Both the position numbers and the translations under genes were made by a program. Shown one piece after another: positions 4,861 to 39,103 of a DNA stretch of 64,000 nucleotides. Position 1 is the stretch's first letter. Each line of letters begins with the position of its first letter. The notes beneath the pieces were generated by a model that worked only from the letters and a program-made list of their open reading frames with translations, was not told where the DNA came from and ran no database searches. The DNA lies in assembly GCA_904063045.1 (NCBI GenBank), contig CAJFCJ010000006.1, forward strand, positions 2,594,946 through 2,658,945, read 5' to 3'. This DNA comes from Dimorphilus gyrociliatus (Eukaryota; Animalia; Annelida).

Positions 4861-7800
4861 TCAGACATGAGCTATGGGAGCTGAGAAGTGCGATCTGGAA
4901 TCAAACATACCCCCGATACTTCCTAGCTTGACGATAGATGAAGAATTGTGAGATTTTACACTAGCTGGAGGGGACGATGGTTTAAATCTACCGTATGAGT
5001 TGGCCCCAATGCTACTTGATAGTTGAGTAGTACCTGTAGAACTATGATTTGAACCTTGATTAGAGCTGTGAGATAGTTCTGCAAGACGATCGGCAAATTT
5101 TGTCAGCTCGTTTAGTAAACATAGGAAACTCGGTCTTCTGGTAGGTGATTCGTTCCAACAGTCAATCATCAAAGTTGAAATGATTTGTGGAGTGTCTGGT
5201 GATGGTCCAAGAATATGACGAAGTTGAATCTTTTCCATGACCTCTGCATTTGAGCAACCTGCATAAGGTTGAATACCCTGATTCCACATTTCCCAGAGAA
5301 GAACGCCAAAGCTCCAAATATCTGAGAAAGTCGTAAATTTACCATACATAATGCTTTCGGGTGCCATCCATCTTATAGGCAACATAGATGAATTTTGCAC
5401 CCTGTAGTAATCGCAGGAGTAAATGTTTCTGGCTAGGCCAAAATCTGATATTTTCACATTGAGACCCTCCGTCAAAAGCACATTACGAGCAGCTAAATCT
5501 CTATGAACAAACCGCCTGTCTGATAAATAAGCCATCCCAGAGGCGATTTGAATAGCAACAGTTGTCAAATCCCTGTTAGAGAGAGGCTCACCGGCCAATC
5601 TTCCATTAATTGAGTGAAGAACTAGTAGTTCGTGAAGGTCGCCCTGTGTCATATACTCGAATAGCATACACCATGGCTGTTGGCGAACAGAAACCCCAAT
5701 GAGGCTGACAACGCAAGGATGTTTGAGATCACGTAGAAGACGAGCTTCCCTCTCGAATTCACTAATGAGCCCATTATTCGGCCCGTCGTACTGTTTGAGC
5801 GTTTTAATTGCCACAGTCTGTCCTGTATATGACAATTCCCCCTTGTAGACTTTTCCAAAAGCTCCCTCACCCAGTTCATGGAGGAAGATAATTGAGTTCA
5901 AAGGAAAATGAGGTATATTCGGTAAGTTACTATGTCTATCTAACGCGTGTTGATGTTGACGTATTTCGACTGCTTTCAGAGGGGTTCCACTCCACGAATT
6001 GAAACGTCGCTTTCGGCACCAGCAAATGCAAATAAGGCCAAAGGTAAGGAAGAAGACGACAGCTATAGATGGCACTAATATCACCATTAGAGTATTGAAG
6101 CTCTTCTGTTCTTCTCCTGAGTCGGCTATATTTAATTTTAGGGGAGAAAAGAATAAACAAATTATGAAATATTCGTATAGATGTCGCTACGTATTATTGA
6201 TTCTGTCAAGTTGTAGGTTAAAAAAAAAAAGAAAAAGTAAAGCGCAGAGATTATCTAGTCTTAACTTTAGGCCTATATAATTATTAATACGATATAAAAT
6301 ACTATAATAGGCTTATCTATCTGCGTATTTTTTTTTTTGTTGACGGGAGGAGAAAGGAAGGAAATAATAAATTACAAGAGAAACAATAAAAAACTCACAG
6401 CATCTTTTGATATCGCATTTTTCAACTATTATCCCACCAGGAGATGCCTCTCTATAACACCAGGGGGCATCGTATTGGCCATTAGGATTTCGGCAATAAT
6501 TATGACCTGCGTAATCCTTGTAAGACTTCCCAGTCCACTTTTTACAGACCTTGCCAGAAATTGTCCGACTAACAAATCCTTTATATGAACTGCCATTGTC
6601 CTTGTAGCAGGACGGTTCGTAGTTATCTGTACAAAATACGTATTGATAAAGGTTTTTAGATGATTATTGTACCTGACATGTGCTTGTCAGTTCTTTTTTT
6701 TATTTTGCACTTGTATGGTAGCTTTGAAGGAGAGATAGAGAATTATATCTAATTTTATTCAAAATAACAAGTGTACCGTAACAGATAAATCGTAAAGGTT
6801 ATAACATTATTAGATAATGTTTATTATTATTTTTTCTCCTATATATTTATTATTGTAAGGTTATGTTATCATTAACTTCTTAATAGTTTAATTATAGGAT
6901 ATTTTATAGAAAGGGGCCCGGAATTTATAGGAAGAAAGGATTTTCTTTGGGTCAACGATTCGTTCGTTAACATTTAGTTGACAAATCTCCTCCCTCTAAT
7001 CAGTCAGTAATACTAATCTTTCTGATTAATCAATTGCATCATAATCCGTCTTCTTTATTTTTCTGTCGACTAATTGGACCCTACACTGCATTGTGTTAAT
7101 TACGTAAGGGGTAGGATACTAATGGGTAGAATTTATACATGCAGTCGTAAATATCCCTAAAGCAATAATGATTAGCTTGAAGGAAAATGCGTTATTCTAT
7201 ACGTCTCTCTTCTCTTGCTACCCAATGGTACTTACAATTTGATGTGGGTAATTTTACACAAAGACGGTTATCTGGCAGTCCTTCGCACGACGGTAGTTGG
7301 TGAGAGTACTGATCATATTCCCGAGAACAGAACTGGCGCTTAACCCATTCGCATTCGGATTTACATAACAATCTCGGCTGAGAGTTGGATGAGCAGGATG
7401 TGTAACGAGTAAGGCACAAGACTCGCTTGAGATAACTCTTACAGGTTTCGCCCAATTCATTAAGAAATGGCAGGCTCCGGGAATTGATCTCCATCAGTTT
7501 ACTTTCGATTTGTGATTGGGTCGATTTGCTGCCGACAAATACCATTTTATCCCCAAGATATTCTGAACAAGTTTCTCCCCTATACGGTTCGCAATAGCCA
7601 TCGCTGGGAGGATCCCTGTCCAAATGTACAATTTCCGGTGGTCTGTTAATTAAACAAAATATTATAAATCTCTCTTCTTTGTATGTATAAACACTCGTAG
7701 AATGTTTCAATTTGTCTTGTGGTGATAGAAAATCATTCATTTTAACGCCCCATAGTTGAAATGTGTAAATAAGCTTTTCGTGACTGAACTAACAAGTATG

Positions 7801-19196: not shown

Positions 19197-25476
<6,280 letters not shown>

Positions 25477-25821
25477 GAAACTAGATAATAGATCATTATG
25501 CTACAATTGAATATATTATTCCTCTTCTATTATAATGAGTTATACTGTATTCTACGATTTTTCTATATTTCGCTTTACATTTTCCTTTCAATTAAACAAA
25601 AATCTTATCATTAAAAGGGTTTAAAAGTATACCATCGGCATCTTTTTAGTACTATACTTGATGTTATATCCTAGTGACATCTACAATATTCGGATAAAAC
25701 TAGAAAGGAAAGATTGCATGCGTTTATTTGAAAGTTTATTTTAAAACATCTTATAGCTTATAGCTAAAATTGTTCAATCAAGTATTTTATAATAAAAATT
25801 GGTTATTTGTATTCGAATTCT

Positions 25822-27042
25822 ATGAATAATATAAGATATCTGGTTAGGACCACAATAAGACTAAGTTCCAATATTCGTGGTGGTTCTTTGATTCCGCGTT
25901 CTACTTCTAGTGTAAAATCTCTTTACGAAGAACCAAAAATTCTCAAAGATTTAAGTAAAGTCTCTACAAAAATTAAAGATGTTAATAAATTTCCGATGGC
26001 AAGAGAAGAGATGACAAGTATAGCTGATCATATTCAAGAATGCAGCGCTGACGAAGTGATGGAGATTCTAATTAACCAACGACAATTAGACAAAGTACAT
26101 TTTGTTTTCGCAGTTAAGCAGCTAGATATCGTATCACAAAATTTTATAGGGGAAGAGGAGTTTGAAAGATATAAGAAATGGATATGGCAACAACCAGGAT
26201 TTTATGTGTAAGTTATGTAAAATCTCAAATAATACAACTAAGAAAGATCTATACCATCAGATTGTTAGAGAAGCTTGCCGAAAAATGCGTGTATTTTAAT
26301 GCAGAATCTACATTACAAATATTTACTAGCTTAAGGGCTTTAGATTTTCCAAATGACAGCACTTTAATTCAGGTTAGACAACCAAGTAGTTATTTTATAT
26401 TGATACTTTTGCGATTATCCTTTGTTTGTCGTAGGCTTATCTAAAGCTTCTAACGAAACACGTAAACGATCTACACTTTGATCAAGTGGTTCAATTGTTT
26501 GCTATTCTTACAAGTTTTGACAATTCGCTACCTAAAGAAGTTGGTATTCTGAAGAAACTATGCAAGAAGATATGCGATTGTAGAATTCTTGAGTCATGTG
26601 ATGTATTGGATGCTTATGGATTAATATTTCTTTTGGAGGTTTACAATGCCGAAATCTTTGAGAGTGAAGATAAAATTATTAGAATTTTAAATTGCTTGTC
26701 AGAGGAGAGAGCGTTTTTAGATTGGGAAAATATCATTGATATCTTATTGATAATGCGTAAAGATATCTTTGAGCTTTGTCCTGAATTTGCCAACTTTGTA
26801 ATTGATTACGCTTGGTGCGAGATGCCCTCTGAACTCACTCAAAGGTGATTTGATACTGAATGAATATAAATTTATTCAATTATTTACTTCTCTTTTCCTC
26901 TAATTTTAGGGAATCGGAAAAAATTATCCAAGTATGCAGAATATTTCCAGAACATTTGTATCTTAGCGAAGAAAAGCTAAATACTATTAAACTTAGGACA
27001 TTCAATTCAGAAACAACAATAAATACAAACGACAGCACATAA
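25822..27042 (+). CDS. Uncharacterised ~346-aa helical protein, possibly mitochondrial and FASTK-family-like; 4 exons
   Basis: Exons 25822-26207, 26261-26372, 26435-26844 and 26910-27042 join in frame. The Arg/Ser-rich, acid-poor N-terminus resembles a mitochondrial presequence. Leu-rich helical segments (LRALDFPNDSTLIQ) recall FASTKD N-termini; the family assignment is inference. Confidence 0.6.
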
Positions 27043-27363: not shown

Positions 27364-30300
27364 ATGGCTATCGATCAAACTCTCTTATTCTTTCTTTCCA
27401 CTGCAATTTTTGGGTTGTGGTGCATCCAATGGCTTATCCACTTTTTTGCTATAGTTTATGCGTGAGTATAAGTCTTTTATTATATAAAACGCTGTATAGT
27501 AACGATGAATATGGTAATAAATACGAACACGTCATTGTCATCAGATGATATCGCTGACTCAATCTTCTACTTTCCTCTGAGTTAGGTCATCGATAAGATC
27601 GCGTCATTCAAATAAATCGGTTCACAAATAGTACAAAATATATTAAAATACACCAATGATATTGGTATTACTTTCAATTCTTGTTCAATAGAACGTTTTT
27701 ATTTTATTGACTACTACGAGAACTTTTTAACATGTATATTTTAGATGATTTTTCAATATTATGGAACATATGCTTGCTATAAACTATTGAGAATGTCTTC
27801 ATTTTTATCAATCTGACAATCAATAAACTATATTTCCCAGATATTTTTTCTTAGATATAAACATAGCACAACCGGAAATTAAAATCAGTAATGTTCTTTT
27901 AATAGAACACTTTAGAATGTTCTCTTTTCCATAATTTAGTAGAATGATGAACGTTTGTATTTTATTGGTTGTAATTCTATAAATGTAAAACGTTATTATT
28001 TATGTTTTATGATTAATCAATCGTATGTTTAAATATTTTCTTTATTATTTTTCTAATATATAGTAAATTGAAACTTTACAAAAAAGAAGAGGTAACGATA
28101 GATGGCTATCCCGGTGTTTCTATTCTTAAACCGTTAACCGGAGCGGATCCTAATTTATATGGAAACTTGGAATCATTCTTTACTTTGGACTATCCTATTG
28201 TAAGTATTTTTTTTTTGTTTATATCTTTCAATAGGAAAAAGTCTTCGCTTAAAAGATAAAGGGACAATATAGTATAAAGTATCTTTGCTCGAATGACAAT
28301 GTCTTCATTATTTTTATTTTTAAACAGTATGAATTACTTTTATGCGTTGCTGAAGATCTTGATTCTGCTGTTCCAATTGTTGAAAGTTTATTAAAAAAAT
28401 ATTCGAAAGTTAACGCTAAATTATTAACATCAGCTGAAAATGTTGGTGTTAATCCAAAGATTAACAACATGTTACAAGGCTATAACGTAGCGAGTTATGA
28501 GCTTATTCTTGTTTCTGATTGTGGAATTAAAGGTAAGATTTTATCGTTTTCTTTTGATTTATATCCTATCTCCTTTTATGACTGTTTTTGTAGTTAAACC
28601 AAATAGTTTGTCAGATATGGTAGAAAAAATGACAAAAGACGTAGGCTTAGTCCATCAAATGCCATACGTTTGCGATAGAAGTGGATTTGCCTCCTGCATA
28701 GAACAGGTGAGAATAAATGACGTTAGATATAATTTAATATTTTTTATACTTAAACATTTTGCGTGTAATTAAAATTACGATTAAACTATATTCATATTAG
28801 AATATATAGTATAGGAAAAAATTGTAGACACACTGAAATAATCGCTTTATATTATTACATAGAAAAGATGATGGCCTAATATTCACTTTTTGACAGTGTA
28901 TCTACTTTAGGGAAGAATACATTTACTTCTGATTATTGTCCAATTCAAACTATTTCTTATAGAAAAATGTAAAATATCCTATATCCATATATTTAATCAA
29001 TGAGTGTTTATTAAATTATTTCTTGTTTTTTTGTTGTTTTATTAAAACAACAAATCATTTGGATGAAATTTGATAAAATTATTAAAAGAATTCAGATCAA
29101 TTTCTTTCTATTATAAGGTCTTATTATATTGTTTCCCCTTCCTATAACTAGACTTCCTGTAGCTTCTCAGCTATAAAACGAATTAAATTAAATAAGAGAA
29201 TATACAGATCAATTGAGAGCTACAAGTATTTTTGTCTTAAGAAACAACGGCTCAGTACTATAAAATAGTAACAAATAATAAACAGAATAAATATCTAGTT
29301 TTCTATCTAAATAAAGCCTTGGTAGTTTATTTCGGAGAAGACTGCTTTCCTTTCTGCATCATATTGTTACCTCTTCAAAAGTGCCTCTAAAAGAAATTGT
29401 TTTCTCCTTTATGAGGTTCTACCAGTTTGCAAGACAAGGCATCTGAAGTTTGTTTCATCTACAGAGAGTGATGACTTTTGCTGCAGAAGCGAATATTGTG
29501 TTGTTGAAAGAAAGTATTTTTTTCTGATCGGTTCTTCTATTAGAATATTTTTAATTTTGTCTTAAGTCTTCCAAATAATTCTAATCTTCAAAATTGTTTC
29601 TAGATTTATTTCTATACAATTTTTTCTCTTTCCACTCTTAAAATCATAATTATGGGAATTGTTTGGCAAAATCGAGGTGGCAGCATTATTTATATCAATT
29701 TACAGGCTTTTAATGAAATTTTTTTCATGCTTTTATGTAAGGAAATAGTTTGAATTAGTTTATATAAAACTGTAAACATCATAATACCTTCTTCCTGCTT
29801 ACAGAGAAGATTCACTGTTTACAATAGACGACTATTATGTCATCGTATTCAGAAACAAAAACTATATACAGTTTTAACATGTCCATAATTCTCACCTTAC
29901 TATATATAAGCTGTACATATGTGAATGAAATTCCTTCATTGTAGAAAATTTTTTTGCTAGATTTTCTTTGGTTCCCGGTTTGCTAAATATTATCTGTTAT
30001 GTGATTTATTGGTAATCAACTGTACAACGGGAATGTGTCTATTATGTAGGAAAAGTTTAATTGATGAAGAAGGCGGTTTAGGAGCTTTTTCGCAGTATCT
30101 AGCAGAGGATTATTACTTAGCTAGTACAGTTTTAAATCGGTAAGAGAGAAGAAATCCCAGATAATGAACACTAACTATTTTCCCCATAGTTTCCTATGCA
30201 AATACGTAATTTTACTAGAAATAGTTATTTTTTTATATTTAATAAGCAATTAAGTATTACTAATCATAAATCATTAGTATTCTTATGAAGCATTTAACAT

Positions 30301-31152
30301 AAGGCTATAATAGTATTAAAGCTTAGCATGCTCTTTTTTACTTTATAGGTTTACTTCGGAACTCATCACGCTAAAATATACTTGAATGCTCAAATTTTGG
30401 GTCAAAACTGTATAACTGGAATGTCGGTAATGGTGCGAAAAAGTATCATTGACGAAGCTGGAGGCCTGCAGGCCTTTTCATCCTATATAGCTGAAGACTA
30501 CTATTTATCAGGAACAATTTTTGATCGGTTGGTTATATTAAATTAATTAGTTAACAATAGTTAGACAATCACGCTTTAATAAATAATGTGATTGATATAG
30601 TTTGCTTGGATTTAACATAGATGATTATTCACGATCATTTTGAAGTCTTTTTTCTTTGAAATATTTACATTTTACATAAACGGATTAATCTTTTTCCTAT
30701 TATTCAGAGGTTGGAAGGTACGTCTAGCTAGTCTTCCTGCCATGCAGAATCATGGAAACTCGACTTTAAAATCTTACCAAGCAAGAATGACTCGTTGGAG
30801 TAAATTACGTTCAGTTTTAGTACCGTTCGCGCATACTGTTGAACCAGTGACAGAAAGTATAGTCTTAGGAATCTTATCCTCTTGGGCGGCTTGGAATATA
30901 TTTAATTGCTCACCCTTAATCTTTTTCACGGCACATTTATTAGTGTGGATGATGCTGGATTATATTTTGTTACGGATAATTCAAAATGGAGAACTATCAT
31001 ATAGTCTTTTTAAATTTGGAACAGCTTGGGTTGTTCGAGAAATAAGTGGTATAGCTTGGTTTATTGCCTCCTGTACAGACTCTACTATTATATGGAGAAA
31101 TCGAAAATATAAAATAAAATGGGGGGGAATAGGAGAAGAAATAAAAAAATGA
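27364..31152 (+). CDS. UGCG: Ceramide glucosyltransferase (glucosylceramide synthase, GT21) with a duplicated alternative exon 5
   Basis: Exons 27364-27461, 28064-28200 ([22 protein letters not shown]), 28328-28532 ([14 protein letters not shown]), 28594-28706 (VGLVHQMP), 29961-30139 or 30349-30527 (AED), and 30708-31152 (RMTRWSKLR, the (Q/R)xxRW motif). Confidence 0.95.
29100..29890 (-). mobile_element. Highly decayed non-LTR retrotransposon 3' fragment, antisense in UGCG intron 4
   Basis: Minus-strand frames, broken by stops and frameshifts, give LYKLI, ..[37 protein letters not shown]. This resembles the post-RT C-terminal Cys/His region of LINEs. No database match was run. Confidence 0.5.
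29961..30139 (+). other. UGCG: UGCG alternative exon 5A (179 nt)
   Basis: TTTTTGCTAG acceptor and GTAAGA donor; stop-free; encodes [60 protein letters not shown]. Confidence 0.85.
30349..30527 (+). other. UGCG: UGCG alternative exon 5B (179 nt)
   Basis: CTTTATAG acceptor and GTTGGT donor; stop-free; encodes [60 protein letters not shown]. Confidence 0.9.
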
Positions 31153-33091: not shown

Positions 33092-34963
33092 ATGACAAAA
33101 TACTGCGTTTGTCAAATATGTAACTGCGGGTAAGTTGAATAATAATGATTTATTAAATAACTTTGATCTAGTCATAAAGAAACTAATAAACTTTTATGTG
33201 AAATTAAAGGAGACACCATTGTCCGGTTCATAAGCGTGGAGTTTTACGGGCAAAGAGTACTGGACCATGTCCAATTACGGAATATAATCAGAGATATAAG
33301 GAACATCCCTTACACCCTACTAAAACAGCCAAACCCGAAGCAACAGCTTTTAGAAGCGAACACCCTTTGGATGATAAAACGACACATAGGTAAATTATTT
33401 GTTATATCTATTGTCATTTCATATTTTCTTCCTTCTAGTTTTTCACTTTATTAATTTTTCGGATAATTCTAGATAAATATAAGACTTTTAATAAGATTGT
33501 TATCACTTTGCTACCAAATAACACTTCTTTTGAAACTTTTCTCTCATTTTCAGGAGAGATTTCATTAAACATCCTCTTGAGAGACCACATGTTCATCAAG
33601 CAGAAGATTATAAGAAGCCAGAAGGAAACTTTGAAGACATGACAAACTATCGCAAAGACTATGACCGTAAGTGAGCTTGTAGCTAAATTTAGACTCGGTT
33701 AATTATTTGCATACCTAAAATACCTTAGGTAAACAAGGAGAAAGGGCTAGAGCTGTGAAACCTGTTGATTTGAAGAAGGCCTTAGGACCATTTAAAGGGG
33801 AACCTACATATAAAAGTTCGTTTTATTTTGCTATTTGCAAAATTATGGATTATCATTCTTTAAAATAGGATTTGATTAGATCGATAGATTCTAATTGTCT
33901 TATCGATTCTATCTAATAAATATGAATATAGTTGTTCTGCCTTGTTTTAGGTGACTTCAGGAAATGGCCAATAGACCGCCATCTTCCTCATGTCAAAACT
34001 GATTATGCTCCTCCAGAGGCTAAATTCGAAGGTTTACCTACTTATAAGAAAGATTACATAAAATATAACGAAGCCCCAAGACAATCAATGAAACCTGTTG
34101 AGTTGGCTAGAGGACCAGATCAACCGTTTGACGATAGAACTGGATACAGAGATCATTATATTAAACATCCTCTACCAGAGAAAGCACTTAAGGAAAAGGA
34201 ATGTTGGAAACCTAACAAGGCTCCATTGGATGGATTATCAAATTATAAGAAGGATTATGTTGAAAAGCACGGCGGACCTATGGCCAGCTGTAAACCAGAC
34301 GCATCGGCGTTTAAGAGTGGCGCTCCACTGGAAGATACGACTACACATAGAAATGACTTTAAGAAATGGGATGCTGAACGACCCTTCGTTCACGAACCTG
34401 ATCAGTATCGAAAGCCAGAAGGAAATATTGATTTAAATACAACGCATAAAACAGATTTCACTCAAAAACCTTTATCTAAACCAAAATCGATGAAACCACT
34501 CGATGCTAAGAAAGTACCGGGAAATTTTACAGATAAGACAAATTATAAGGATGATTACAAGAAGTGGCATATGGAAAGGGAAAGACCAGTGGTTAAAGCC
34601 GATTACTCCCCTCCAGAAGCTCCTTTCGAAGGCCTACCTACGTACAAGAAAGACTATGTTAAATACAACGAAGCACCGAGAAAATTAATGAGACCAGCAG
34701 AAGGCGGTATTCAAAGCGATGCTCCTTTCGATGATCAAACAATGTACAGAACAGAGTACATTAAGAAGGACAATCCACCTTGCCCTGCCGCTATAATAGA
34801 ATCAGCGAGTTCAAAATTCCAATTTAAAGAGCAGGATGACAGCGGTCATAAATGGTATGAACCTGTAAATGGTAAGTCGTCAATGACAACTCAACCAGTA
34901 CCAAGAACTTACAGCGCCTCTCAACAAATTAAGAATAATAACGAAGGTCTAGTATGTGCTTAG
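33092..34963 (+). CDS. SAXO: Stabilizer of axonemal microtubules (SAXO/FAM154), Mn-repeat microtubule inner protein, 5 exons
   Basis: N-terminal MTKYCVCQICNCG|RHHCP motif of SAXO1/2, then twelve T-x-Y/H-x-x-D-Y/F Mn modules. Exons begin at 33092, about 33210, 33555, 33730 and 33951. Confidence 0.9.
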
Positions 34964-36288: not shown

Positions 36289-39103
36289 ATGGCTGCAAAC
36301 AGTAAAACCGCAAAGTAAGTTACTTTATTTAATACTTTAACGTTTAAATACGATTTGACAATGAATTGTTTTTAGTTAAAGATATTCTTAACATGTTAAA
36401 CATTATTTTTATGTGATTTATAGGCCTTAAATCATCTTTATGATTGCTTAATATGTAAATTATAATATCGTACGATAAATTTCATAAGGGACGTTCCGAT
36501 TCTTTAAAATATAGCCTGATTGTTAAAGAAATATGAAGACATTTAACAAAGATATTTAAATGTCTATTAATTTTTTGGAAAATGTTTAAATATTGCAAGG
36601 AAAGAGGGAAACATTTAATTAAATTAAAAAACTGATGTTCACAAAGAATTTAACATCTGTGTCCTTTCATAATGAGGGTTCAATGCTATTTGTACCACAT
36701 CCTGTTACATCCCTAAAGTCAATCTGTTTCACAAAAAATTTTAATTAATGTAGTAATTTGATGACCTAATTCTATTTTATTTCCTTATTAATATTGTTCT
36801 ATTTTTACATACATATATAATTCTTTTTTTTATCTATTTCAGGGCTGACATTGCTCTCATAGGTCTGGCCGTTATGGGCCAGAACCTGATACTTAACATG
36901 AACGACCATGGCTTTGTTGTAAGTTATAATTTTTTTTTCGATTTTATGTTTATAGAATAATTATGATAATTACATAATCGTTCATTTTCACAGGTGTGCG
37001 CATATAACAGAACCGTTGAAAAAGTAGATAGATTCTTGGAAAATGAAGCTAAAGGAACCAAAGTTATTGGTGGTAGATCGTTACAGGTTAATAACTGTTT
37101 AATTGCAATTAATTGTCTCAACTAATATTATTATTACATAAAAACTATAGGATATGGTTAGCAAGTTGAAGAAACCAAGAAGAATTATGTTACTCGTAAA
37201 AGCAGGTTCAGCTGTTGATGATTTCATTGACAATTTGGTACTTGAATTACACAATATAATTATTTATAAATAGTCATTGCAAAAAAAACATTAATTTTTT
37301 TTTCGTTTAACAGTTGCCTCTATTGGAGAAAGGCGATATTATAATTGATGGGGGAAATTCAGAATACAACGATTCTATTGTAATTAGCTTTTTTTTTTGT
37401 ATTAAATTATTTCTTATCAATCATTTGATAATAACTAATATAATGCTAACTTTTTTGTTTAAAAATATCTAATTTAGAGGAGATGTAAATCTTTAGAAGA
37501 GAAAGGATTTCTTTTTGTTGGTAGTGGCGTTAGTGGAGGTGAAGACGGAGCTCGCTATGGTCCATCCTTAATGCCTGGTGGTTCAACTGCTGCTTGGTAA
37601 GAAAAGAGCTGTTTGACCTAACTAATTCAAAATAAATCTTTGAAACTTTTCTTATAGGCCACACATTAAAGATATTTTCCAATCAATTTCGGCAAAGGCT
37701 GACGGAGAACCTTGCTGTGATTGGGTAAATCCAATATCTTCAATAAATCCCCAATACTGAATAATAATTTGTCTTACTTTAACATATATATATATATGTA
37801 GGTTGGTGATGAAGGAGCAGGCCATTTTGTTAAGATGGTTCACAATGGTATTGAATATGGAGATATGCAGTTGATTTGCGAAGCTTATCATCTTATGAAA
37901 CAAGCTTTGGGTATGTCCTGCCAGGAAATGTCCGAAGTATTAACTGAATGGAACAAAGGAGAATTGGAATCTTTCCTTATTGAAATTACCGCTGATATTC
38001 TTAAATTTAACGATAAGGATGGTAAGCCTCTCGTTGAAAAAATTCGTGACACTGCCGGTCAAAAGGGAACTGGAAAATGGACGGCAATTTCTGCATTAGA
38101 TTCGGGCATTCCTTTAACTCTCATCGGTAAGATTAAGAGAAACTGTGTTAAAGCATTGAGTAAGATAAAATTATATATGATAAATGTTAAAAACAGCTGA
38201 AGCCGTCTTTGCTCGTTGCTTGTCATCTTTGAAAGACGAGAGATTAGAAGCTGCAAAGCAATTAACAGGACCTTCAAATGCTAAGTATGCTGGTGACAAA
38301 AAGCAATTTATTGAACATATCAGAAAGGTAAAGGCCATTTTGATTTTTCAAAAGGCAAATTGTTACTATAATATCTTTTAATTTCCTTGATAGGCGCTTT
38401 ACGCTTCAAAAATAGTCTCATATGCCCAGGGATTTATGCTTATGAGGCAGGTAGCCAAAGACAAAAATTGGAAATTGAATATGGGTGGTATAGCTTTGAT
38501 GTGGAGAGGCGGTTGCATCATCAGAAGGTTTTATTTTCATATATATACCTAGCCATACTCATTAATATTTTGTCTTTTTTATTGTTAATTTAGCATTTTC
38601 CTTGGTGAAATAAAGAAAGCTTTTGACAAAAATCCAAGTTTAAGTAACTTAATCTTAGATGATTTCTTCAAAAAAGCAATTTTGAATTGTCAAGTAAGAA
38701 TTTCTTTTTACTTAATCAATGAATTTTAATGATGCTAATTATAAATCTCATGAAAGGAATCGTGGCGTAAAGTCGTTAGTGAAGCTGTTTTACTAGGAAT
38801 TCCAACCCCTGCGTTCAGTACGGCTTTGGCCTTTTATGATGGATACAGATCAGGCTGGCTTCCTGCCAATATGATTCAAGTAAGTTCCCAGTCAATAAAT
38901 ATATTTATAATCATAGACGGCTTTAACGATCTCTTTTAACGATGTAATTATTTGTATTCTATAATTTAACTTTTATTCAATAGGCTCAAAGAGATTACTT
39001 TGGAGCCCATACGTATGAATTATTGTCGGAACCTGGTCGATGGATTCATACTAATTGGACTGGACACGGTGGAAATGTCGCTTCATCTACGTACAACGCG
39101 TAA
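36289..39103 (+). CDS. PGD: 6-phosphogluconate dehydrogenase (decarboxylating), multi-exon
   Basis: [83 protein letters not shown], and the C-terminal [17 protein letters not shown] introns lie between these segments. Confidence 0.97.

Follow-up and report, generated by a model that had tools for sequence, protein, structure and literature searches.

The DNA analysed here is a stretch of 64,000 nucleotides (nt) of the annelid Dimorphilus gyrociliatus (hereafter, the window; G+C content of 31%), whose plus strand carries a six-exon gene for ceramide glucosyltransferase, also named glucosylceramide synthase (GCS). Glucosylceramide synthase is the single entry to most glycosphingolipids and a drug target, and it is usually taken as one enzyme per gene. 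In the gene of this worm, the exon that encodes a part of the active site is present as two homologous copies in tandem, 5A and 5B, and a productive messenger RNA (mRNA) needs exactly one of them, because their common length of 179 nt is not a multiple of three. Since selection keeps 5A protein-coding, it is strongly implied, from the sequence, that this one gene gives rise to two isoenzymes. The parts of the gene are the following (joints are written as last position of one exon > first position of the next):

27364 to 27461, plus strand: GCS exon 1, with the start codon at 27364; joint 27461>28064 in RNA contigs, and translation.
28064 to 28199, plus strand: GCS exon 2; RNA-contig joints 27461>28064 and 28199>28328.
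28328 to 28532, plus strand: GCS exon 3, human residues 81-148, with the equivalents of D92 and D144; RNA joints and gap-free alignment to the solved UGCG.
28594 to 28706, plus strand: GCS exon 4, ending in phase 0; joints 28532>28594 and 28706>30349; positions 44-81 of Pfam family PF13506.
28707 to 29960, plus strand: intron 4, 1254 nt.
29226 to 29960, plus strand: part of intron 4 that is transcribed and, in RNA contig 4, linked with 5A; in-frame TAG at 29958-29960.
29961 to 30139, plus strand: exon 5A, the alternative active-site cassette, human residues 187-246; Cys at 200, 207, 212 and 215, Phe at 193.
30140 to 30348, plus strand: 5A-5B intron, 209 nt; 30142-30346 is in no RNA contig.
30321 to 30332, plus strand: conserved 12-mer GCTTAGCATGCT, with the sole GCATG of the gene inside it; identical in 6464-6475 of contig L001 from a related worm.
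30349 to 30527, plus strand: exon 5B, the canonical cassette; joints 28706>30349 and 30527>30708, contig depth of 541.
30708 to 31152, plus strand: GCS exon 6, with R272-x-x-R275-W276; TGA stop at 31150-31152.

The RNA data come from one run (X1, 2017), in the form of assembled contigs alone; X1 is RNA because its contigs are spliced. The positions of the joints 28532>28594 and 28706>30349 were read after shifting the cut points.

The profile of family PF13506 (Glyco_transf_21) is matched by exon 4, 5A and 5B with scores of 35.1, 45.4 and 49.2 bits, respectively (cut-off of 21.7). Vertebrate UGCG (solved structures 26qf and 26qs) and the worm protein align gap-free at residues 81-148, 187-244 and 247-391 (the last encoded by exon 6, E-value of 6e-32), and the residues D92, D144, C207, G210, M211, E235, D236, R272, R275 and W276 are all present in the worm. 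In these gap-free alignments all the catalytic motifs of GCS were found, that is, (i) D92; (ii) D144; (iii) E235-D236, in 5A and in 5B; and (iv) R-M-T-R-W at 272-276. The mutagenesis by Marks et al., as far as it is cited in PMC9996764, covered D144, D236, R275 and W276. Judged by its motifs, each of which was found, this is a bona fide gene for a ceramide glucosyltransferase of family GT21.

Exon 5A is located within the 1,642 nt that separate exons 4 and 5B. Exons 5A and 5B are each 179 nt long, have no stops in frame 1 and run from phase 0 to phase 2, with the borders AG|ATTT...TCG|GTAAGA (5A) and AG|GTTT...TCG|GTTGGT (5B). They are identical at 32/59 amino acids (aa), or 33/60 when the common split Arg codon is counted, and at 107/179 nt. 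In the window sequence, splicing as 4>5A>6 or as 4>5B>6 gives an intact protein of 391 aa either way; with both exons together, translation stops after codon 255, i.e., 12 codons into 5B, and with neither of them it stops after codon 191. Both exons match positions 83-137 of the PF13506 profile (E-value of 8e-12 for 5A and 6e-13 for 5B), which excludes a chance resemblance. Furthermore, in the alignment with the solved ceramide glucosyltransferase neither exon needs a gap over residues 187-244, which include C207-x-T-G-M211 and A234-E235-D236. The segment of residues 187-246 comprises the acceptor-side loop, the C-x-T-G-M strand and the catalytic E235-D236. An artefact of assembly is excluded as well, because X1 RNA contigs cover both exons at 100% identity and the related worm carries the pair on a genomic contig of its own. 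A preliminary description of this DNA had already recognised two homologous, stop-free exons with AG/GT sites, of which exactly one has to be used and which hold the AED motif (Asp236) and C-x-x-G-M; all this is borne out, the identity of 33/60 with the split Arg codon counted. In their anatomy and in their evolution, 5A and 5B have the features of mutually exclusive tandem exons.

Age of the duplication and selection on exon 5A

A relative of the worm was found by a search with exon 6 in the Logan assemblies (protein P0151, 86% identical). Its contigs L001-L003 come from three runs and are essentially identical to one another, and they have in common with the window the gene order GCS, SAXO-like gene and 6-phosphogluconate dehydrogenase (6PGD). 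Both exons are present on contig L001 (5A, 6109-6287; 5B, 6499-6677), with intact AG/GT sites and with open reading frames (ORFs) of 391 aa for both isoforms; the 5A of the relative is free of stops and frameshifts, and the three introns around the pair measure 139-211 nt. In consequence, the tandem pair is older than the split of the two worms. The paralogs 5A and 5B differ by 0.39-0.41 nonsynonymous substitutions per site (dN), with saturated synonymous sites, and the orthologs by a dN of 0.06-0.08. No long identical tract that would point to recent gene conversion between 5A and 5B was found.

The exon itself has a longer history than its duplication. In the gene of the horseshoe crab Tachypleus tridentatus (contig L006, 29447-29626), residues 188-246 correspond to one exon, in single copy and with the same boundaries, and the 179-nt exon is accordingly older than the chelicerate/annelid split. 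In the gene of the flatworm Macrostomum, that segment is intronless and present in one copy. There was no annelid or mollusc among the 20 GCS cluster representatives (0/20), and a metagenome scan with an alignment of 5A found nothing.

Between the two worms, 5A shows 27 nt differences and 7 aa differences (52/59 identical). The ratio of nonsynonymous to synonymous divergence (dN/dS) between window and relative is 0.06-0.07 for 5A, with a synonymous divergence (dS) of about 0.8; it is 0.01-0.04 for 5B and 0.044-0.055 for the constitutive exons, in which dS is about 1.2 and synonymous sites are near saturation. When 27 substitutions were placed randomly on 5A with the observed share of transitions, they caused a mean of 17.3 aa changes, 7 or fewer changes in 0/20,000 trials and a stop in 65% of the 20,000 placements; the Monte Carlo p was < 5e-5 for 5A and for 5B each. 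The third-position divergence of 5A is the lowest in the gene (25% vs 39%, Fisher p=0.044, which is marginal). Low synonymous divergence is common in regulated alternative exons.

In a tree (unresolved) of the 59-residue segment, the 5A stem is long (1.13) and its tips are short, 0.046 for the window and 0.12 for the relative. Read in this way, the sequences record a burst of change after the duplication and conservation from then on, and the window lineage gives no sign of decay. As far as one relative allows, the substitution pattern rules out that 5A is a dead pseudo-exon. The pair is real, old and selected. The preliminary description had argued for an old, selected duplication from the heavy divergence with conserved catalytic residues, and had named stops, frameshifts or a dN/dS near 1 in relatives as marks of a dead pseudo-exon; in the relative compared, 5A carries none of them, keeps its AG/GT sites and has a dN/dS as low as that of constitutive exons.

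What distinguishes the two cassettes

The cassettes were compared with 121 animal GCS, mostly from arthropods. At least 90% conserved in these proteins, and kept by 5B, are 19 positions, and 5A keeps 16 of the 19. The residues kept in 5A are F189, G190, Y197, L198, C207, T209, G210, M211, K217, G224, G225, F229, Y232 and A234-E235-D236. Near-invariant residues are altered in 5A alone in three cases: T191S, A200C and S212C (position 212 is Ser in 100%). At position 193, 5A has Phe, 5B and the human enzyme have His, and the other animals have Gln (61%) or His (31%). These four states of 5A (T191S, A200C, S212C and F193) are identical in both worms; F193, C200, T208, C212 and C215 are present in 0-3% of the 121 other animal GCS.

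The most visible change concerns cysteine. Exon 5A encodes four of them, in the pattern C200-x6-C207-x4-C212-x2-C215, all written TGT in both worms, whereas 5B and the 121 other animal GCS have C207 alone. As a mere curiosity, the Cys-rich stretch of 5A gives a weak, sub-threshold Pfam match to an iron-sulfur-binding motif (E-value of 0.068).

Modelling of human GCS places E235 and D236 at the metal, lets V208 and G210 orient UDP-glucose, and surrounds the ceramide head with H193, F205, C207 and Y237 (PMC9996764). Among these modelled substrate-site residues, 5B and 5A are the same at 207, 210, 235, 236 and 237, and they differ at 193 (H/F), 205 (Q/I) and 208 (I/T). On this model, we infer that catalysis would be kept in 5A and that the acceptor side and the orientation of the sugar would be altered. 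A further and less probable reading is that the 5A isoform might be more than a kinetic variant, namely a chemically different enzyme, with (i) another lipid acceptor; (ii) another sugar donor; (iii) another sensitivity to inhibitors; or (iv) a redox- or metal-switched activity. The reasons for it are F193 in place of His, I205, T208, C212 in place of an invariant Ser, and the conserved pattern of four Cys. For vertebrate UGCG, no paper on a duplicated exon of this segment was found; of the two worm versions, 5A carries F193, C200, T208, C212 and C215.

Such a selected second cassette, which keeps the catalytic Glu-Asp and alters His193, residues 205 and 208 and the invariant Ser212, would amount to a natural experiment on the residues that set acceptor, donor and inhibitor specificity. 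The case is of interest because a key lipid enzyme has its active site in this cassette, and because 5A is unusual in its make-up, conserved, Cys-rich and devoid of His193.

Exon choice, transcripts and rival explanations

The two exons differ in their donor sites, which are strong in 5A (GTAAGA in the window, GTAAGG in the relative) and weak in 5B (GTTGGT and GTTTGT, respectively); both exons' donors are U2-type. In the intron between them, the 12-mer GCTTAGCATGCT is identical in both worms and ends 16 nt (window) to 23 nt upstream of 5B; a shared 12-mer or longer appeared in 28/2000 shuffled intron pairs (1.4%). The AGCATGC within the 12-mer contains the sole GCATG of the gene of 3.8 kilobases (kb), and the density of this motif in the window is 0.28 per kb. 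It is described that Fox-1 proteins, when bound to (U)GCAUG in the intronic flank upstream of an exon, repress that exon, presumably because the branch point is masked; exons 5A/5B of egl-15 in Caenorhabditis elegans are an example (PMC2777236). The mark of Rbfox targets, a conserved (U)GCAUG in an intronic flank, is found in the 12-mer upstream of 5B, and this suggests a switch of the Rbfox type. A second conserved intronic block lies right after the 5A donor, where 30140-30175 corresponds to L001 6288-6320 (GAATCCC..TAATGA.CAC).

Other mechanisms of exclusivity were considered. Steric hindrance is unlikely, given the 209 nt of the intron between the exons. Competing RNA stems were dropped, since nothing spoke for them: the inverted repeats of 28707-30707, which are short and AT-rich, do not stand out, and the best intron-intron duplexes are no stabler than shuffled controls in both worms. 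No Rfam families were found in the window.

In the X1 contigs, the mRNA with 5B is seen through its two joints, 28706>30349 and 30527>30708, at a contig depth of 541. The only RNA contig with 5A has 854 nt and a depth of 47, and neighbouring intron contigs have depths of 9-22. It is composed of 29226-29254 and 29317-30141, a mini-intron of 62 nt with GT..AG ends (29255-29316) being spliced out. Exon 5B is, therefore, the major form in the sole transcriptome, and the 5A region is transcribed. The double-inclusion joint, 30139>30349, is absent from the X1 contigs. With regard to the expectation in the preliminary description that exon switching would give two GCS isoenzymes, the constraint on 5A speaks for it, while the mRNA contigs show the 5B path alone: among the five joints that it named, the two of 5B were seen in these contigs of one run and the other three (28706>29961, 30139>30708 and 30139>30349) were not.

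All the data considered, 5A probably functions as an alternative coding exon that replaces 5B and, very probably, it provides a minor or conditional second isoenzyme. The proposed explanation has the following steps: (i) the 179-nt GCS exon was duplicated in tandem before the two worms diverged, and both copies stayed protein-coding; (ii) 5B would be the default, canonical version and 5A the minor or conditional one, perhaps tied to certain cells, to a stage or to one sex; (iii) 5A keeps the metal and catalytic residues, alters residues modelled at the ceramide head and UDP-glucose, and has gained three Cys; (iv) transcripts with double inclusion or double skipping would meet an early stop and presumably be removed by nonsense-mediated decay; and (v) a regulator would probably bind the GCAUG-containing element upstream of 5B, so that 5B is blocked and 5A, with its strong donor, is favoured, as in the Rbfox/Fox-1 model. 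Of these points, we infer the inclusion of 5A in mature mRNA, the decay of double-inclusion transcripts, the regulator and any enzymatic difference.

Several observations weigh against this explanation. As regards RNA, the joints 28706>29961 and 30139>30708 are in none of the X1 contigs, which are of a single run and of a form that loses rare paths and can show presence, not absence. The 5A contig retains 644 nt of intron 4, whose last three letters ahead of 5A are an in-frame TAG, and ends 2 nt past the donor, in GT, which fits the intron (GTA) or 5B (GTT) and not exon 6 (AGG). Likewise, the contig of exons 1-4 ends at 28708 (exon 4 plus GT), which fits the intron (GTG) or 5B (GTT) and not 5A (ATT). 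As regards conservation, a single relative was compared, and the selection figures average both lineages. In the representative search, the best identity of a 5A-type protein elsewhere was 61%, and 133/150 matches were nearer to 5B; a short-protein search with 5A was blank, a weak test in that gene callers missed the 59-codon ORF even in L001. Finally, the putative regulatory element is a lone site, reads AGCAUGC and not UGCAUG, and may simply belong to the branch-point region of 5B.

One rival explanation takes 5A as a regulated poison exon, whose inclusion together with 5B would cause a frameshift and decay and would tune the output of GCS, the isoform with 5A only being irrelevant. The stop that double inclusion brings 12 codons into 5B is in accordance with it, and so are the strong donor of 5A, the three introns near the pair, all short enough in the relative (139-211 nt) for default splicing, and the GT end of the 5A contig, which fits a 5A>5B join. 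A poison exon, nevertheless, needs no in-frame protein constraint, and yet the conservation of 5A is specific to codon positions and includes C207, G210, M211, G224, G225, E235 and D236; furthermore, the joint that it predicts, 30139>30349, is missing from the X1 contigs. It is, in consequence, an unlikely account of the exon.

The origin of the 5A-bearing contig bears on a second rival. Intron 4 measures 1254 nt in the window vs 139 nt in the relative (L001 5970-6108), its lineage-specific part being about 1.1 kb within 28720-29957. A blastn search with this extra stretch matched nothing in L001 and found it only once in the window. The stretch is non-coding, and the sole ORF of at least 40 aa wholly within intron 4 has 41 aa and lies on the minus strand. 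Introns of 61-62 nt and 128 nt in the gene are in accordance with the median of 66 nt reported for Dimorphilus gyrociliatus (PMC7854359), and intron 4 is unusually long for such a genome. The extra 1.1 kb may have been inserted in this lineage and act as a promoter, or it may belong to a long intron that is removed slowly, short introns being what this species is adapted to (PMC7854359), and the contig of 29226-30141 could be the product of an internal promoter or a splicing intermediate. According to the rival explanation, 5A would be used from a promoter within this 1.1-kb part, giving a truncated product from Met211 or a non-coding RNA. Contig 4 begins in intron 4, has a spliced mini-intron of its own, continues unspliced into 5A and exceeds the neighbouring intron contigs in depth (47 vs 9-22), all of which fits; but the relative, which lacks the 1.1 kb, still conserves 5A, the stretch of 24 codons ahead of the Met shows the same conservation (22/24) as the remainder, and, with D92 and D144 missing, the product could not act as a transferase. 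As an account of 5A, an internal promoter is quite improbable; its transcript may coexist with the use of 5A instead of 5B.

It is very improbable that 5A is a dead or dying pseudo-exon, the relic of a duplicate that is never in translated mRNA, for although the X1 contigs have no 4>5A or 5A>6 joint and show 5A solely with a retained intron, and no 5A-like protein appeared in the searched libraries, its dN/dS is 0.06-0.07 at a dS of about 0.8, 0/20,000 neutral placements were as conservative and 65% of them gave a stop, its splice sites and all the catalytic residues are retained in two lineages, and its window branch is short.

Related systems and neighbouring genes

That exons in tandem are used in an either/or manner is well known. 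For GCS, full-text literature searches gave no paper linking the enzyme with duplicated or mutually exclusive exons. Nor was a paper on the solved ceramide glucosyltransferase structures found.

The nearest parallel is egl-15 (FGFR) of C. elegans, with its exons 5A/5B, to which the GCS pair is similar in three aspects: (i) adjacent homologous exons; (ii) a swap on the substrate or ligand side; and (iii) a GCAUG element upstream of one of them (PMC2777236). In egl-15, one exon per mRNA is used under regulation by Fox-1, while in the worm GCS the role of the element, the binding protein and the use of 5A are predicted from sequence. The gene and the phylum are also other ones and, unlike in egl-15, the reading frame in GCS also forces exclusivity, through the 179 nt.

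More than one version of GCS per genome is also reached with whole-gene paralogs, such as the several genes of Caenorhabditis and those that go by names like 'ceramide glucosyltransferase-B'. But while these paralogs are full copies, the worm GCS duplicates just a cassette of 59 residues inside one gene, so that promoter, N-terminal half and C-terminal membrane part are the same in the two versions. If the proposed use of 5A is true, this animal would diversify the glucosylceramide step by splicing and not by gene duplication. The pair also offers a compact system for the study of either/or exon choice in a genome of mostly ~66-nt introns, with a single conserved GCAUG element and with introns of 139-211 nt in the relative. 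Apart from this, two library proteins, P0001 (639 aa) and P0002 (2355 aa), each contain two complete GCS copies in tandem, and they are fused models or true tandem genes.

The genes next to GCS are all on the plus strand. Upstream, at ~21000-25500, there is a formin-like gene whose FH1 stretch is long and proline-rich, followed just before GCS by a gene at 25800-27000 which shares an RNA contig with GCS. Downstream lie a single-exon gene for a SAXO/STOP-like repeat protein (33932-34960) and the gene for 6-phosphogluconate dehydrogenase (~36900-38000).

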